DNA of 56,955 nt, counting the filler, from Platydemus manokwari (Eukaryota), in assembly GCA_037951405.1 (NCBI GenBank). It is 5 parts of 5 records of this genome, joined end to end, with 100 filler letters (N's around TTAATTAATTAA, not from the genome) between each part and the next. Parts side by side here need not be neighbours in the genome. Positions count along the whole stretch, not along the records: positions 1 to 10,639 come from JBBMOY011117441.1; 4 more parts are not named here. One strand, written 5' to 3'. Made by a program: the position numbers and the translations under genes. Under the pieces are notes generated by a model, which did no database searches, had not been told where the DNA came from, and saw only the letters and a program-made list of their open reading frames with translations. Every line of letters starts with the position of its first letter. The stretch's first letter is position 1. Positions 1 through 10,639 of this stretch are shown one piece after another.

Positions 1-3000
1 TATAAATTCAATGTAAATGAAAGACCGCGAATTGTTGAGAAAATAAGATTGATAATCAATTTAGTTGAAACAAATCAGTTTGATAAAATTAATGAAGATT
101 TGGAAAAATTCATTACAAATATAGTACGCCGTTTAAAAAACATTTTCAAGAAGCCTCATGGTAAGAAGATTGATGATAAGAAACCTCAAGGTGAGAATAT
201 TGATGATAAGAAACCTCAAGGTGAGTCGATTGATAAAAAGAAACCTCAGGGTGAGACGATTGATGATAAAAAACCTCAAGGTGAGAATATTGATGGTAAG
301 GAACCTCAAGGTGAAACGATTGATGATAAGAAACCTCAGGGTGAGTCGATTGATAAAAAGAAACCTCAGGGTGAGAATATTGATAATAAAAAACCCCATG
401 ATGAGAAGTTTCATGATAAGAAGCTTAAACTGAAATATGATAGAAAAGTAAAATTTCTTACAATTATTCAATTCTTTAAAATAATCAATTGGGAAAAATT
501 TATCTATAAATTCAATGTAAATGAAAGACCGCGAATTGTTGAGAAAATAAGATTGATAATCAATTTAGTTGAAACAAATCAATTTGATAAAATTAAAGAA
601 GATTTGGAAAAATTCATTACAAATATTGTAGTCCGTTTTAAAATCATTTTAAAGAAACCTCACGGTAAGAAGATTGATGATAAGAAACCTCAGGGTCAGA
701 ATATTGATGATAAGAAACCTCAAGGTGAGACTATTGATGATAAGAAACCTCAATTTGAGAATATTGATGATAAGAAACCTCAAGGTGAATCGATTGATAA
801 AAAGAAACCTCAAGGTGAGACTATTGATGATAAGAAACCTCAAGGTGAGAATATTGATGATAAGAAACCTCAAGGTGAGACGATTGATGATATGAAACCT
901 CAAGGTGAGAATATTGATGATAAGAAATTTCAAGGAGAGAAAATTGTTGACAAGATACCTGAAGATGTGACGATTGATGATAAGAAACCCCCAGGTAAGA
1001 AAATTGATGATGAGAAGCTAAAAGTCATTTATGATAAAAATGTAAAATTTCTTACAATTATTCAATTCTTAAAAAAAATCAATTGGGAAAAATTTATTTA
1101 TAAGTTTAATCTAAATGAAAGACTGCGAATTATTGAGAAAATAAGATTGATAATTAATTTAGTTGAAAAGAATCAGCTTGATAATATTAATGTAGATTTG
1201 GAGAATTTTATAACAAGTATTGTTAACCAGTTTAAAAACATTTCTAATGCTTTTACAACAAGAGAAATAATAAATACAATTCATGTTTATTTACCAAGTA
1301 ATTGGAAAGATCTCCTTAGACGAATTCCTAGAATTGATCAAAATTTATGGATCGAGAGAATTAATTTTTTAGTATCAAAATTGAATGATACAAAAGCTGA
1401 GGTCAATGTCGATTATCTGAATGAATTGCAAAACATTATCGATTTGATTTATCAAGAAGATTTAAAATTTAAAAAAGAAAATAAGTTAAGTGTTCAATCT
1501 GTTAACGATTTCCGAGACAAATTAAGACAATTAAAAGAATGGAATTGGGAATCTCTTCAAATTTACATTGATGAGAAAATTCGTCAACAGATAATTAATG
1601 AGATTAAAAGATTTATGACTATTTCCGATAATAACAAGTTGGATGAACTAAATATTAAAACATACAATTGGTTTATACAAATATTTGGTATATTTTCCAA
1701 ATATAATGAAATTATTAAAAAAGGTTTCGTGTTTAATGCTCAGACTAAAGAATGGGAAAAGAAAATTGTAGAACCAGTTGGCGAAAATAAACCAAATAAA
1801 ACTGTTATTGACGAAAAAGTGAAAAATGACTTAATATCCCAAGTCAATCAATTGAAAAGTTGGAATTGGGAAACAATGTTGATATATGTGGATGAAAATA
1901 TGCGTAAGCAAACTAGAGATAATATTCAAAAGATAATCTCGATCATTGATAATAAACAATTTGATCAAATCGATAATCAATTTTTGAGTTGGTTTTTACA
2001 AATATTTGATATATTTGCCGAATATAATGAAAATGTTAAAAATGGTTTTGTTTTTAATGCTCAGACTAAAGAATGGGAAAAGAAAATTGTAATACAAGTT
2101 GGCGAAAATAAACCAAATAAAACTGTTATTGACGAAAAAGTGAAAAATGACTTAATTTTCAAAGTCAACCAATTGAAAAGTTGGAATTGGGAAACAATGT
2201 TGATATATGTGGATGAAAATATTCGTAAGCAAATTAGAGATAATATTCAAAAGATAATCTCGATCATTGATAATAAACAATTCGATCAAATCGATAGTCA
2301 ATATGTGAATAATTTTGTACAAATATTTGGTACATTTTCCAAATATAATGAAAATATTAAAAATGGTTTTGTGTTTAATGCTCAGACTAAAGTGTGGGAA
2401 AAGAAAATTGTAGGGCCAGTTGGCGAAAATAAACCCACTAAAACTGTTATTGACGAAAAAGTGAAAAACGACTTAATATCCCAAGTCAATCAATTGAAAA
2501 GTTGGAATTGGGAAACAATGTTGATATATGTGGATGAAAATATTCGTAACCAAATTAGAGATAATATTCAAAAGATGATCTCGATCGTTGATAATAAACA
2601 ATTCGATCAAATCGATAGTCAATTTGTGAGTTGGTTTTTACAAATATTTGGTATATTTTCCAAATATAATGAAAATATTAAAACTGGTTTCGTGTTTAAT
2701 GCTCAGACTAAAGTATGGGAAAAGAAAATTGGCAAGACTTTCCGAAAAAAAAGGAATATTTATGTAGAACGAAGAGAAAAGATAAATTCACATCACAGAG
2801 TGGGATCTGTCGAACACAATAAACACATTGGAATAAATAGTGGGAATTCAAAAGTCGGTGTAGGAAATACTGTGCATGAACAATTTCAAATTAAAAGTAA
2901 AAATATTATAAAAGATAGATATAAAGTTGGGGAAGATAGATCCAAAGTTATTCAGATGGTCAGTTCTCGTGGTCATGGAATAAAAATGGTTGGCGGGGTT

Positions 3001-3203
3001 CACTTTTATCCTTTAATTGGTCTCAATTTAAGGTAATTTTAATTTTTCACACTGACTTATTGATTTCAAAATTTAGGAAACATTCAAGCTTGAATCGTTT
3101 TCACTTCTGTACATATGTTCGAAAGGTCGACAGTGGATTCTTAACAAAATTCACCAATTGTGGAATTAGACAACAATTCATTTGCAAAAAACAATTGAAT
3201 TAA
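1..3203 (+). CDS. Split C-type lectin / giant helical-repeat protein, paralog A (5' part lies upstream of the window)
   Basis: Frame is open from position 1 to donor AG|GTAATT at 3032/3033. A 44-nt intron (3033-3076) leads to terminal exon 3077-3203 encoding KHSSLNRFHFCTYVRKVDSGFLTKFTNCGIRQQFICKKQLN*, which matches the C...C...FIC pattern of a CTLD C-terminal half. Homologous to the gene at 6653-10414. Confidence 0.85.
148..420 (+). repeat. 30-bp coding minisatellite (KKPQGENIDD)n, cluster 1, ~9 units
   Basis: Units of AAGAAACCTCAAGGTGAGAATATTGATGAT are visible directly. Confidence 0.95.
652..1017 (+). repeat. 30-bp coding minisatellite (KKPQGENIDD)n, cluster 2, ~12 units
   Basis: Same unit as cluster 1. 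Part of a larger duplication whose units start near 1, 505 and 1099. Confidence 0.95.
1666..2730 (+). repeat. 321-bp (107-aa) near-identical coding tandem repeat, ~3.3 units
   Basis: GCTCAGACTAAAG recurs at 1738, 2059, 2380 and 2701, an exact 321-bp period. Confidence 0.95.
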
Positions 3204-3669
3204 AAATATAAACCTAAATTACAATTTGTTTTTTGTCAATAGTTCAACATTTATTAAAGAATTGATATCAAAACATTAATCAATAACTTAATGCTTTCTC
3301 TCAAATTTGAGACCGCATTCAATTAAAATAATTTATAAATTTGTACATTTCTCCTCAAAATATTTCGTTTTAGGATAATCGAATTTAATTGTATTCTCTA
3401 TAGAAATTGTTTCGAGTTGCTTTGCAAATTTAAGATTGTAATTTGTGGTCGATATCTTTTCGTTTTAAAGATTTGTGTCTATTATTTTCGTCAAAAGTTT
3501 TCTTGAGTAGTTATTATGTTTTACACATTAAGTCCTTCGTGGATTAGAACTCGTAGCAAAGAGTTTGTTATCTTTTTATTTTATTTATTATATTTTTTTA
3601 GCTTATTATTTATACACTGTTCATGATTTCATGCCGTATTTATTTTACAAATTCTAATTTGTACAAGAT

Positions 3670-4020
3670 AATTTAGCCTAAGTTATGAAAAATGGCTCTA
3701 AAATAAAAAATTTAGTTTTAGGTGCATTATAAAAAATTTATAGTAATTAATTAATATAATTCTAAATTTTTGTTTAATTGTCAGAAAAAAATATCTGTGA
3801 AATCGAAAATTAGATAAAACAGAGCTTTAGTATTTTATTAACATGACTACTTGAAAAATCGTTCATAAATGTCAAATTTCAATAAATCGAAAATTAGAGA
3901 TGGAAACTAATTTTACAATTAGAATGAATTTGTGAGAATTTTACATTTATTTTACAAAAACAATTGATATTCGATTATTAAAACATGTCGGGTTTTGTTA
4001 GGACGTTATGTCATCTAATG
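3670..4020 (-). repeat. Diverged copy of an AT-rich dispersed repeat, reverse orientation relative to 34650-35010
   Basis: By-eye similarity to the reverse complement of 34650-35010 (CTAAAATAAAAA...CAGAGCTT...TTGAAAAA blocks in the same order). Confidence 0.55.
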
Positions 4021-4439
4021 TTTTATTGAATATCTTCCTAACTTTAGATATCTACATGGCATTATTAACCATTTAAAATTGTTTATCAACCCAGGAAATC
4101 GATTTATGTGCAACCACAATAATGAAGTACTTTTGAAATCCAGTTAGTTCATATAATTTTTCTCTAAATTTATAATTCTTTTTTAAAATTAATTTTGATA
4201 TGAAATTTTAAAAAATATTCCTGAAATTAAAATATTAAAATTAAGATGAAAATTTCATCAAAATGGAATTAGATTAAAGTGCCCATAATTTTTTGTTATA
4301 TTATTTATTTATGTTTTATTATGTTATTTTCTAAATACCCTTATTATATTATATTTTAATAAAATAACTTTTGCTTAATTTGTGTTTCAAAGTGGTTTGG
4401 AATTGCCGTCATCCATTGAATAGCTTTTGACTATAATGA

Positions 4440-5060
4440 CCTTGTTTAAAAGGGCAACCAAAAAGTTCCCACTGAAGATGCAAATTTTAAAAATGTGAGT
4501 AATTCACATTGTGCTGTCCCGCAATAGCGTTGAAATGAGTGTCTTCAGTACCAACTTTAATAAGAACAGTAGACAGATAATCCGTTGTTTTCATAACAAG
4601 CATGAATTAGGCATTTGTATTACTCTACTATAGATTATAATAGTGAATTTGATTTGATACTTGCAAGACGAAGTATCTCTTGAATTTCCCTCACAATTGC
4701 AAAACATCATAATAATTGGTAGAGTCAGGATTAAAGTTAGTAATTGATATGGATTGTGTTAGATCATTATATACAAAAAATTACTCTTCTAGGCCAAGTT
4801 CATTAATAACATTAAAAACATAAGAAATGTTAAAAAATTGTCGAAGTTGCATATGCCTAAAAACAAAATCAATATTTCAAGATTTGATTCATCATGACTA
4901 TATCCATTAGTAAGGTAGTTATTAGTATTCGGAATGATGTCCTTTCACTCAATGGAACCACCACAGCCCAACGATATTAAGGAATAAAATTTGGTGGAAA
5001 TCCAGTTTCCGTTTATTTTCATGGATATACTCTTGTTCGAAAGACTACGATTTGTGGACA
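4440..5060 (-). pseudogene. Decayed multi-exon gene, possibly F5/8 type C (discoidin)-like
   Basis: Partly splice-flanked peptides HMQLRQFFNISYVFNV, DYLSTVLIKVGTEDTHF and WELFGCPF. No continuous frame could be built. Confidence 0.25.
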
Positions 5061-6610
5061 GCTGAATGACATAAAAGCAAATCATTACTCCTCAATTAAC
5101 CTTATAGGCTGTTAGTGATAAATCAGATCATTAGAATCAAAATAAATTTTTAAAAAATTTGGAATCATTAAAGATTTGCCTTTATATTCCATGGTCCTGG
5201 AAAACACCTTTAATCGGGTCCAGCCAATAGTTAATTTATTTTATTCTTTCATAGACAAGCAGAACCCAACAGCAGTTATCAACATTTACTGGTAAAAACA
5301 GCTTAAATATTTGTTGATAAACTATAAAAGTATCATAGGGTATTTTGTATTTGTTTATGATTTCGGACATAATAATCGTATCAATGAAATTAAAATACAT
5401 CAATATCAAGATTAAATGATAATCGATAATTAAAAAATCAAATCATTAAAGTTTATAAAAATCGAATCAGTTTGGATGGGCCTTTGAGAACTAGTAACTC
5501 ATTCTCACAAATATCCTATAAATAGTTTTGTGCGTCTGTGTTTTTTAGGTGGCTTATACTTTACATGTGAAATTTCATGTTTTGTTTGGTCTCCTGGAAA
5601 GAATGCTTTGTATGTGTAAGTACGATATGTGAAGACAATGTCTATACTGGTACTCTTTAAACAAAATTTCTAATAAATGATGAAATCTTGATGTTACCCT
5701 GAAGAACATTATATTATTTATAAATATAAACACAACCACAGCACACAATCCTTATAAAGAGATTGAAATACATATTGAAATCCAACAGCCTAAATAATAA
5801 TAAAATATAAACACCAATATTTAGCTCACCATTAAAATAGTGATGATGAGACACTAATATTGCTGGGTTTTTATCTTTCATATCTGAATTTTGGAGCATT
5901 TTATCTACTTTGTAGTCTAGATTTCCACTAAAGTGTTCACAGCAATTAAGTAAGTTAAGTTAATATTGTTTGAAACTAAATCTAAAAACGTTATTTTGAA
6001 CTTTATTACATACGAAAAGGGGTAATTTTAACAAATATTATTAAATAATAAACTAATTAAAAAGCTACAAAGAAATTAGGTCACTAATGAATTGATAAAA
6101 CAAATGACGAGTATTTATGAAAATTAAATTAGTAAATTTATTAAACATGTTTTAATATTAAGTGGACTTTGTTGAATAACAGGGAAAATTGAAATTAAAA
6201 TGATGATAGAAAAATAAATATTTATACTTCACCTTAACAAGAAGACCAAGATTGCTTGAATCTGTATGATCGTGGTATACAATGTAAATCTCTTACGATT
6301 CCAGATCAAATTATATGACTCATTCCGCCCAAAAATAACAGAAAATGTGCAATAATCATTATGATTTCAATAATGTATCAAGATATAACAAAAAGTACTT
6401 CAACAAAAAATATATTAGGAAATTCTATTAGATTCATTCCATGTGGTTTATCAAAATCAATATCATAAAAAATTGAAAAAGGTAAATATGGTTCTTCTAT
6501 TTCAAAATGTTTAATTCTACAGCAACGGATTTAACGTGAGTATGAATTTCACAATTATATGATAATGGCTCTCAAGATAGGCATTTGCAAATCCATATGA
6601 TTCAAGAATT

Positions 6611-6618
6611 TATATAAA
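6611..6618 (+). promoter_or_regulatory. Candidate TATA box of split-lectin paralog B
   Basis: TATATAAA ~35 nt upstream of ATG 6653. The AT-rich background weakens the call. Confidence 0.4.
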
Positions 6619-6652
6619 TAATTGAGCAAACATCAAGGTGTAAAACTCAAAA

Positions 6653-9600
6653 ATGAAAAAGATTTTGTTAGCAATTAAATTGTTAATGCTCGTACATCTA
6701 TGTAAGATTTGCAGTTACTATGTCGATTTTGTTTTTCATTAATAAATTTGATTTTCAAAGGTACATCAATTTGCAGCGACGCGTTAGACGAAGAATTTGG
6801 TACAAAATTTGAAATTAACTATTTGTTATCTTTATTAATGGTTTTTTAGAACGATATTGTGTACAAAACGAAGCTTGTTACTTTGTTTCGAAATTTAAAA
6901 CGACTTATGAAGATGCACAATCGATATGTGAACAAAAGATTCACCAAAGCCCTGCACCACTTATTGAGAAAGACAAGGTTTTTTCAACCATAGACAAGAT
7001 TTTACAATAATAAATAATAATTGTAGATTGTTTTAGTAAACAAAACTAATAAGAATAGCTATTGGGTGGTCGATCCTGCTAAAGAACCAGGTGGAAGGTA
7101 AGATATATTTATTTTAATTTATGGAATCCAAATTCAGTAAATAAAACATTTTTACAGGAAAAATTACATTATTATTTGACTAAAAATAAATCAAAATTTC
7201 CTTTTAAAGATTCTAAAATTATTAAAAGGTTTACAATTTCGTACCAAAGAATATTTTCAGGCTAAATTTAATTGTCAATAAAAGAATTATACTAATGTAA
7301 ATTATTATCGATAACATGCTGAAATATTGTAGACATTTTGGATCAAGAAAGAAATTCAATATCAAATTGAAACCTTTCAAAAGACAGAAAATAACTACAG
7401 TAGGCCATATAAAAATTGCTAAATTCAAACATGCATTGTTGCGAATTCTGGAAAAATACTCCAAAATTCTAGAAGAATCAAAGTGGTTTGCTTTTCTTAA
7501 TTATTACGAAGAGAGTGATCAACCAGTTATAGAACACAGAATAAAAACATTTGTTAAATTAGTAAACAAGAAAGATTTTGACTATATCGATAGAGATACG
7601 GCTGAATTCATTACAGAAGCTGTGGCGAAATTAATAGAATACGAAACAAGATATCTCATTGATAATATGTATGATGTTAACAAAAAATTGTCACTATTCA
7701 AAAGATTTGTGAAATACATTTCATTACTGGAAGAAATAAATTGGGAAGAATTGGTTAAAATTTATGATGAATACAGGAGTGATGAAATAATAAAACGAAT
7801 GAAGATATTCATCGATTCCGTTAGAAATTTGCAATTAGAAAATTTAGATGAAAATTCAATTGAATTAGTAAGACATATTGTGAAACCAATATTAAAAATC
7901 AAAATAAGAATTCTTTTCGATCATGATCAAGATAAGGAAAGAGCCCAATCAATTATGGATACATCGAAAAAATATGTAAGCATATTAGAACATTTAAAAT
8001 GGAAAGAAATCGCAGAAAAAGTTGAAGAAAGTAAGAAAAAAGAAATAAAAGAGAAAATAACGACATTCATGGAATCAGTAAGACAAGGTAAAAAGGAAAA
8101 TATTAATATCGAATCAATAAATTCAATAAACGAAATAATAACGATATTAGAGACACTACAAATAAAGTTAATATACAGTTTGAAAAATAATAACAACATT
8201 TACAATGCAATAATAAACGCAAGTAAAAGTTTTATAGACATAATGCAAACATTAGATTGGAAAAATTTGATAAAATATTTCGAAGAAAAAGTTAGAGGAG
8301 ATATTGATAAAAAAATTAACACGATTATCAAATTGAGTAATGAAAATAAAGAAAGTAAAATAACTATAGATTTATTGAATAATATACATGAAATTGTCAC
8401 ACATTTCCAAAGGATTACAATCAGAGAAGCCTGTAATTGCGATACCTTTGAAAAAGCAGACGAAAATTACGAAAATCATATGTTAGTTGTACAATATTTG
8501 ATGAAAAATAAATGGAAGGAAATGGTTCAACACATACATATCAATAAAAGACATGAAGTCATAGAACAAATAAAATTATTTATAAAACTTGTGAGGGACA
8601 AAGAAATTAACAAAATAAATGGCAAAATGCAAAACGAAATCATAAAAATAGCAGAAAAATTAACTGAAATACAAATAAAACAGGACAAAAATAGAATATT
8701 CCGAAACATAATCACTTATTTTAAAGGATTGCAGTGGGAAAACCTTTTAAAATATTTCGATGCAAATCAAAGATCGGATATTACAGATAAAATAAAATCA
8801 GCTATCAATATTGTCACAAATAAGAATTATGGAGAAATAACGAGTGATTTATACAAATATATAGAAGGAATTTATCACAAATTCAAGCAATACGATATTG
8901 AACACGAAAAACCAAGCCATGTCACTGTCACTGATAAACATAGAGATTTTGTAAGTAGTGTTCGATTCTTACAAGGTGCTAAATGGGAAGGGCTTTTGAA
9001 ACATTTTGATGAAAAAGAAAGACCCGAGATCAGAGACAAAGTGAATTTAGCTATAAAACTCGTTCATAATAAGGAATACAATAAAATCGATGATAATTTA
9101 CACAAATTCATTCATACCGTCACTAAAAGATTTAAAAAATTTGATATCGATCTTTACAAACTAAGTGAAAAGAACATTTATGATATCACTGTAAAATTAA
9201 ATCAATTAATAAAATGGAAATGGAATAGTTTGATGATATATTGGCATGTTATTATCAGGTCAGAAATAGAAAAATATATTGAAAAATTTGTCAGTGCCGT
9301 TGATAAGAAACAATTTGATAATTTAGATTTAGAAAGTTTTAATAAATTTGTTCAAATTTTTGATACCTTTGCTAGAATAAAGAAATCTCTTGAACATGGA
9401 TATATTTTCAATTTTAAATCCGACACTTGGGAAAAGCCTAAATCACATATTTTAGACTCAGTAACTGGTAAATATGTTTTACCACCGACAGCCATAGCTG
9501 GTTTAATCGATAAAGTTACAAAATTATTAAAATATGATTGGAAGACTCTTATAGAGTATATTGATGAAAGCAATCGTAAACAAATTTCCGTAAAATTCTC

Positions 9601-10414
9601 TACAATTATTACACTCATTGAAACGAAGCAGTTTGACAAAATTACTGTTAAATATCTCAAATTTTTCGAACACACTTACAATACATTTGCACAGTTATAT
9701 CATCTAATCCAAAATGGATATGTTTATAATGTTCAATCTCAAGTTTGGGTAAGAAAAGTTCAAGTGAAATCAGTTCATATCGCTAAAACAGTTATTGATG
9801 TAAAAACAAAATCGGATCTAGTACAAAAAGTGAACCAACTAAAACAAATGAAATGGCAAACCATGTTGTCATTTGTCGACATAAATAGTCGTCAACAAAT
9901 TAGCGAACATGTTACTAAAACAATTACAACCGTTGAAAATGAACAATTTTCTCAAATCACTGTGGATCATTTTAATACTTTCTCGAGTGTTTTTAATACC
10001 TTTTCTAAAATGAATACGTTCTTGCAAAGTGGATACACGTTCAATACGGAATCTAGCGTATGGGAAAGTTCAGAAAGTTCGACAGTTGAAACTATTTCTC
10101 GTAAGAAAAGATCACTATTGTCCGAATTTCGTGAAAAAATAGCTAATAAAATATCGAGAGAATTTCATTTATTTCGTGAAACAAAGAATCGACTTGGTGA
10201 CATTCTTCGAAAACCTCTAAACTGGTTAAGCTCGAAGTATTTTTATTTTGATATATATTTACTTTTATGATACTATAATTCCCTTAGGAAACTTTCAATC
10301 TTTAATCCGTACCGATTATGCACTTACGTGAGAAAAAGCGGCAATGAATTCTTAACAAAATTCACAAATTGTGGAATAAAACAACAATTTATTTGCAAAA
10401 AGAAATTGAGTTAA
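6653..10414 (+). CDS. Secreted split C-type lectin-like protein with a 968-codon helical-repeat insert, paralog B (complete)
   Basis: Exons 6653-6701, 6761-6799, 6850-6977, 7027-7097, 7333-10236 and 10288-10414, all GT-AG and phase-compatible. Signal-peptide-like MKKILLAIKLLMLVHLCTSICS. CTLD N-half YCVQNEACYFVSKFKTTYEDAQSICEQ...SYWVV. C-half LCTYVRK...FTNCGIKQQFICKK*. Optional extra exon 7138-7228. Confidence 0.85.
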
Positions 10415-10639
10415 ATAAAACACTCTAAATTGCATTTTGATTGATATCTAATGCTTATATATTATACTTTTATGTCATTACTGAAAAGATATTTTATAAT
10501 GATTCTGAGGTTATAAAAAAATTATATTAAGGTTACATTTTTGTGCAAAAGGTTAATTTTTGGGCTAAGGTATAGACTACTCTGAACATTGTTTTATCAA
10601 ACTAATTTAATCTAAAAGTTGACCTACATATTATGAATA

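Follow-up and report, generated by a model that had tools for sequence, protein, structure and literature searches.

A predicted gene of Platydemus manokwari in which a giant repeat-coding exon appears to split a C-type lectin domain

In a 56,955-nt stretch of DNA from Platydemus manokwari (GenBank assembly GCA_037951405.1), hereafter the window, which consists of five genomic parts joined end to end with 100 filler letters between each part and the next, we characterized a predicted gene on the first part (positions 1 to 10,639, record JBBMOY011117441.1) that appears to encode a secreted C-type lectin domain (CTLD) with a single giant exon interrupting its long-loop region. This exon codes for ten tandem helical units followed by a conserved furin-type cleavage motif, and comparison with a tandem paralog, with other genomic contigs and with two database proteins indicates that the gene belongs to a family.

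Few extracellular folds have been studied as thoroughly as the CTLD, which is regarded as one compact domain. If our reading is correct, its long loop tolerates a whole multi-domain cargo of about 1,000 residues, with probable maturation into two chains. Furthermore, the foldable repeat module of about 76 amino acids (aa) has no match in Pfam, NCBIfam, PDB or Atlas representatives and, since neither lectin half scores in Pfam, such genes escape Pfam annotation. The full-text literature covered, which includes few subscription journals, contained neither a split CTLD nor a description of a repeat-lectin family.

Results

Gene structure

Six exons were predicted (Table 1), with GT-AG limits at every boundary and introns of 59, 50, 49, 235 and 51 nt, whose guanine-cytosine (GC) content (18-24%) lies below that of the exons (24-44%); the piece holding the locus is AT-rich eukaryotic DNA of about 26% GC. 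Exon 5, with 2,904 nt and phase 2 at both ends, displays zero stop codons in its own frame versus 33-109 in the other five, together with a codon-position bias of the coding type; the chance of an open frame of this length is about 1e-35, and the product has an isoelectric point of about 9.3-9.4. Among the acceptors that keep its frame free of stops, the one at 7332 comes first, with 7347 and 7383 as alternatives. Searches were carried out exon by exon, and the joined exons were translated only for frame, stops and cysteine positions; by this frame arithmetic alone, the full set gives a product of 1,105 aa and omission of exon 5 one of 137 aa, both free of stops. An earlier note on this DNA had proposed the six-exon model with a giant exon of phase 2 at both ends, and the GT-AG boundaries and stop-free frame agree with it. 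Within intron 4, a stretch tried as an alternative exon (7158-7228; 71 nt, AG/GT-bounded, stop-free, with the length and phases of exon 4) has 14% GC and no sequence similarity to exon 4; it was rejected, and its agreement with that exon in length and phases is probably due to chance.

Table 1. Features of the lectin-repeat gene and of its upstream paralog (positions along the window).
Feature	Position	Strand	Description
Exon 1	6653..6701	+	Holds the start codon; hydrophobic stretch resembling a signal peptide, 11-aa hydropathy peaking at 2.9
Exon 2	6761..6799	+	Signal end and short acidic linker; AG/GT boundaries, 44% GC
Exon 3	6850..6977	+	Putative CTLD N-half: Cys33, Cys39, beta-1, helix-1 Cys56; PDB matches and paralog copies
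Exon 4	7027..7097	+	Probable helix 2, beta-2 (YWVVD, WIGL-equivalent), long-loop start; strong GTAAGA donor; assigned by position
Exon 5	7333..10236	+	Giant phase 2-2 exon; 968 codons, ~116 kDa, without transmembrane segment
Exon 6	10288..10414	+	Putative CTLD C-half: Cys1075, Cys1092, Cys1100 in FICK; stop codon; AATAAA immediately 3'
Basic leader IKLKPFKR	7361..7384	+	DNA-level match in paralog contig; might be cut by a convertase as a second, dibasic site
Ten tandem ~76-aa helical-bundle units, invariant Trp	7424..10021	+	Extra beta-hairpin, GY-x-[FY]-N...W, in units 8-10
RKKR furin-type site	10100..10111	+	Sole R-x-K/R-R of the insert
Upstream paralog, giant exon (5' cut by piece edge)	1..3032	+	At least 7 units; RKKR 2743-2754
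Upstream paralog, terminal CTLD C-half exon	3077..3203	+	After a 44-nt phase-2 intron, 3033-3076

The earlier note had also pointed out that donor 7097 joins acceptor 10288 in frame, and the resulting 137-aa product is indeed stop-free and keeps all CTLD cysteines. Alternative splicing yielding this short lectin, with exon 5 skipped, alongside the giant form would be compatible with the symmetry of the exon. Symmetry alone, however, makes any skipping in-frame, and the event would require an intron of 3,190 nt whereas the others are mostly of 44-59 nt; the intron downstream of the giant exon is minimal in both paralogs (51 and 44 nt), and a C-half homolog search, limited in its reach, gave no short relative. 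The short isoform that the note had suggested is therefore unsupported, and we regard two-isoform splicing as improbable.

The lectin halves

Exon 3 alone retrieved 12 chains from PDB, all of them CTLDs, including agglucetin, mucrocetin, CD69, NKR-P1A and CL-P1 (expectation value, E, 0.27-1.3, individually insignificant), and its alignments with agglucetin span beta-1 and helix 1, that is, the N-terminal strand and first helix of the CTLD. On the C-terminal side, a profile of three terminal-exon sequences had as its top match the C-terminal strands of REG4, also a CTLD (E 0.084), and retrieved the snake CTLD bitiscetin as well, the remaining matches being unrelated; exon 4 by itself gave zero database matches. 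The order beta-1, helix-1 cysteine and putative beta-2 in the N-half, the beta-3 cysteine followed by Cys-x7-Cys (FICK) in the C-half, the predicted signal peptide and the lack of sugar motifs are shared with known CTLD proteins. The putative beta-2 strand reads as a degenerate YWVVD at the expected place, with WIGL itself absent. Furthermore, Cys56, Cys1075, Cys1092 and Cys1100 occupy the positions of the two canonical CTLD disulfides, the three in the C-half being invariant in three sequences; by CTLD homology, the pairs would be C56-C1100, linking helix 1 to beta-5, and C1075-C1092, linking beta-3 to the segment past beta-4, and Cys33 and Cys39 may form a short extra N-terminal pair. CTLD-like motif strings arose in 9 and 1 of 3,000 shuffles, figures which are optimistic given that the sequence was already known when the patterns were drawn up.

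The sugar motifs EPN/QPD and WND (Ca2+ site II) are absent from exons 3, 4 and 6 and from the paralog exon, with only EPG found there; thus, Ca2+-dependent sugar binding by the split CTLD is not expected, and the gene falls outside the true Ca2+-dependent C-type lectins. That the flanking cysteine motifs constitute some other small disulfide cap, not derived from a CTLD, would agree with these absences and that of WIGL, with E values of 0.08-1.3 and with the lack of a Pfam match; we consider it highly improbable in view of the exon-3 matches (12 of 12 to CTLDs), the CTLD as top match of the C-half, and a cysteine spacing that fits on both sides. As judged from its sequence, the lectin-repeat gene is best filed, provisionally, as a variant of the CTLD superfamily.

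The insert starts about 9 residues past YWVVD and stops about 10 residues before the beta-3 cysteine, which supports its placement in the long-loop region, where the CTLD fold is variable and evolves independently (PMC7618208). CTLDs normally have 110-140 residues (PMC7618208), a contiguity that 968 codons interrupt here, and about 120 residues remain after discounting insert and signal; the long loop would thus reach some 970 residues, unlike the usual few dozen. The earlier note had described a long-loop split of a CTLD by a giant exon, a view that gains from the insert position and from the recurrence of the arrangement in paralogs and in a database protein.

The repeat array and its relatives

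The ten Trp-anchored units of exon 5 align nearly gap-free with seven units of the upstream paralog and with eight from the database proteins P0001 (UPI000602F892) and P0002 (UPI00060AB4B2), and a unit profile built without the main gene recovers all ten (E 3e-11 to 4e-20). The units have no conserved cysteine, and the whole insert holds 2. A two-unit model obtained from 20 aligned pairs reached a predicted local distance difference test score (pLDDT) of 87 and a predicted template modelling score (pTM) of 0.46, with each unit modelled as four helices, three of them long and one short, plus a hairpin; the low pTM and the low-confidence linker suggest an array of beads on a string. Single-sequence folding of the whole exon 5 was poor (pLDDT 40). 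No family or fold match to the unit stood out in Pfam, NCBIfam, PDB sequences or Atlas representatives, and scans of exons and units against Pfam, NCBIfam and PHROGs gave no consistent family; scores for DUF4042 and CRAL_TRIO_2 were put down to an artefact that arises when repeats are added up. Fold searches with the two-unit model returned generic helical bundles only (best Z 6.0, within noise for such bundles).

The giant frame of the upstream paralog shares 30% identity with exon 5 (E 2e-73), and its terminal exon, joined through a junction of the same phase 2 as in the main gene, 66% aa identity with exon 6, the paralog donor being the only in-frame GT among nine nearby. Blocks of 9 and 12 copies of a 30-nt (10-aa KKPQG...) repeat lie between its early units, and one stretch of 504 nt is duplicated and another of 321 nt recently triplicated (92% matches); the triplication and the spacer-repeat blocks show that the arrays are still changing. 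A 3,287-nt genomic contig matches, collinearly and at similar distances, exon 3 (6857-6929), 7361-7384 and, in repeat unit 1, 7456-7516, which indicates that the N-half is linked to a repeat exon in another gene too. Two further genomic contigs match the terminal exon, and the family probably numbers at least four genes.

Among 1.84 billion protein representatives, P0001 and P0002, both UniParc-only entries, were the only two relatives found; from their overall identity of about 30%, they probably belong to another species. P0001 consists of six repeat units, and P0002 is a single chain that runs from two units through a hairpin, RKRR and a linker to the CTLD C-half; both proteins contain the repeat unit of the gene described here, including the divergent LPSNW unit of the upstream paralog, and both are missing the N-half. 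An Atlas feature search returned P0002 as CTLD-like (0.86), which is a lead only. Word-based homolog searches, length-limited so that a blank weighs little, found none for the giant exon and otherwise only P0002; a scan of metagenomes found no family member, and no contigs carrying P0001 or P0002 are on record.

A small lectin gene with a separate nested gene or mobile-element open reading frame (ORF; from ATG 7316 to the stop at 10270) in its intron would accommodate the complete 984-aa ORF, which can stand alone. The start of this ORF, however, is hydrophilic and without a signal, and no transposon or phage domain appeared in profile scans. Both paralog frames end a few codons from a donor of matching phase, with the C-half exon following 44-51 nt later, and in P0002 repeats and C-half form one protein. 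Hence, a nested ORF seems to us very improbable.

The furin-type site

Each giant exon contains exactly one R-x-K/R-R, which is RKKR in both and lies 5-13 residues past the last hairpin Trp, and P0002 carries RKRR at the equivalent position. The substrate motif of proprotein convertases is therefore found, at the level of sequence, just past the final unit in every sequence extending that far (3/3), whereas chance predicts about 0.005 occurrences per 20-aa stretch in each of the two giant-exon proteins. The linker beyond the site is not conserved, differing among the three sequences in both length and sequence: that of the paralog has 92 aa (2755-3032) and is rich in His, Gly, Lys and Val, and that of the main gene has 41 aa and is unlike it.

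With an array followed by a conserved furin-type site, the loop would probably be opened by cleavage after folding, and the site implies passage through the secretory pathway, for which only exon 1 provides a signal. The earlier note had viewed the lectin as a disulfide-clamped scaffold for a loop of about 110 kDa. Taken as a permanent clamp on a closed loop, without cleavage, that view fits the gene layout equally well, and the long loop of CTLDs is variable and evolves independently (PMC7618208). It leaves unexplained, however, a furin-type motif kept in place across three sequences of about 30% identity, and we consider it unlikely. From that view, the split of the CTLD is retained, and the plain closed loop is replaced by ten helical units and the conserved site that follows them.

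Upstream of the array, the 24 nt common to the leader and the third paralog contig are exactly the codons of IKLKPFKR, a dibasic site in a very basic leader. KPFKR as a possible second convertase site is a lead only.

Discussion

What the sequences show directly is how the predicted exons are laid out, the array of repeats, the conserved motif and a family of related genes. On this ground, we lean towards a secreted precursor whose lectin halves fold together as a disulfide clamp and which a furin-like convertase cuts after RKKR. Secretion, folding around the loop, cleavage at RKKR and the two-chain product are inferred from the established biology of CTLDs and convertases. One gene would produce a secreted precursor of about 1,105 aa comprising signal peptide, CTLD N-half, basic leader, ten units, RKKR, variable linker and CTLD C-half. 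In the endoplasmic reticulum, the two halves would assemble into a CTLD that does not bind sugar via Ca2+; the disulfides C56-C1100 and C1075-C1092 would hold it together, and the array would form its long loop. A cut after RKKR by a furin-like convertase would then give a two-chain protein, with a larger chain of about 120 kDa, whose array would now have a free end and form a rod like beads on a string, and a smaller, disulfide-held chain of about 10 kDa, the C-half.

Comparable arrangements are known in other proteins. Snaclecs extend the CTLD long loop for domain swapping, modestly. In proinsulin and relaxin (C-peptide) and in factors V and VIII (B-domains), a large internal segment lies between co-folding parts and is cut at basic sites, and the B-domains of coagulation factors V and VIII each come from one exon of about 3 kb. 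The likeness to proinsulin and to the factor V/VIII B-domains concerns the way of working, with no sequence relation shown; unlike in those proteins, the insert here is a folded, conserved repeat array and constitutes most of the protein mass, so that the array is probably the product and not a spacer. A tentative extension, which we hold as possible but doubtful, is that the CTLD acts, in a lineage-wide family, as a folding and sorting clamp of a proinsulin-like precursor: cuts at both KPFKR and RKKR would release the array whole, like a giant C-peptide, freeing a rod of about 105 kDa, built from a helical repeat not described before, as the main secreted product and leaving a two-chain CTLD.

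Nematode polyprotein allergens (ABA-1/NPA) are also secreted tandem helical units with a conserved Trp and furin-type processing, which the present array resembles in these respects. In NPA, however, a cleavage site follows every unit, and the units are longer and have cysteines, whereas the units described here have about 76 aa, are essentially Cys-free and are followed by a single site after the array; the Pfam NPA profile gave no match, and the array does not group with these allergens. Saposin-like (surfactant B, SapB) repeats require six conserved cysteines per helical unit of about 80 aa, and with neither a SapB match nor conserved cysteines the units fall outside that family as well.

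Several points weigh against the cleaved-precursor reading. All splice junctions of the lectin-repeat gene are predictions, and they stay so because the contigs of the sole sequencing run with the locus span the introns unbroken, that is, the run behaves as genomic DNA. The CTLD matches of both halves are individually insignificant (E 0.08-1.3), and neither half reached Pfam Lectin_C when each exon was scanned singly. P0002, which lacks the N-half, is itself probably a predicted gene model, and the repeats have no family or fold match to indicate a role. Moreover, a possible in-frame mini-intron of 42 nt (10101-10142, GTAAGA...TAG) would delete RKKR, although its purine-rich acceptor makes it unlikely.

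As for the role of a secreted, cleaved precursor, our guess is that gland cells could secrete it in bulk as a structural or storage material, such as adhesive, mucus, egg capsule or yolk; the array would be the payload, and the CTLD would serve for packaging, sorting or assembly as its head. In planarians, capsule tanning requires a C-type lectin of the yolk glands (PMC5544531), which is comparable to the window gene by description only.

Neighbouring sequences

Between the two paralogs, 4440-5620 (+) holds broken coding-like fragments with stops, of which 4981-5112 resembles a P-loop stretch; searched apart, these pieces gave no Pfam or PDB match and one weak PHROG of unknown function. Contig depth climbs to 122 at 5096-5293, so 4440-5620 is probably what is left of a repeated element that has decayed. 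At the 3' end of the piece, 10560-10639 is the edge of a very high-copy repeat, with a summed contig depth of about 14,000 in the last bin.
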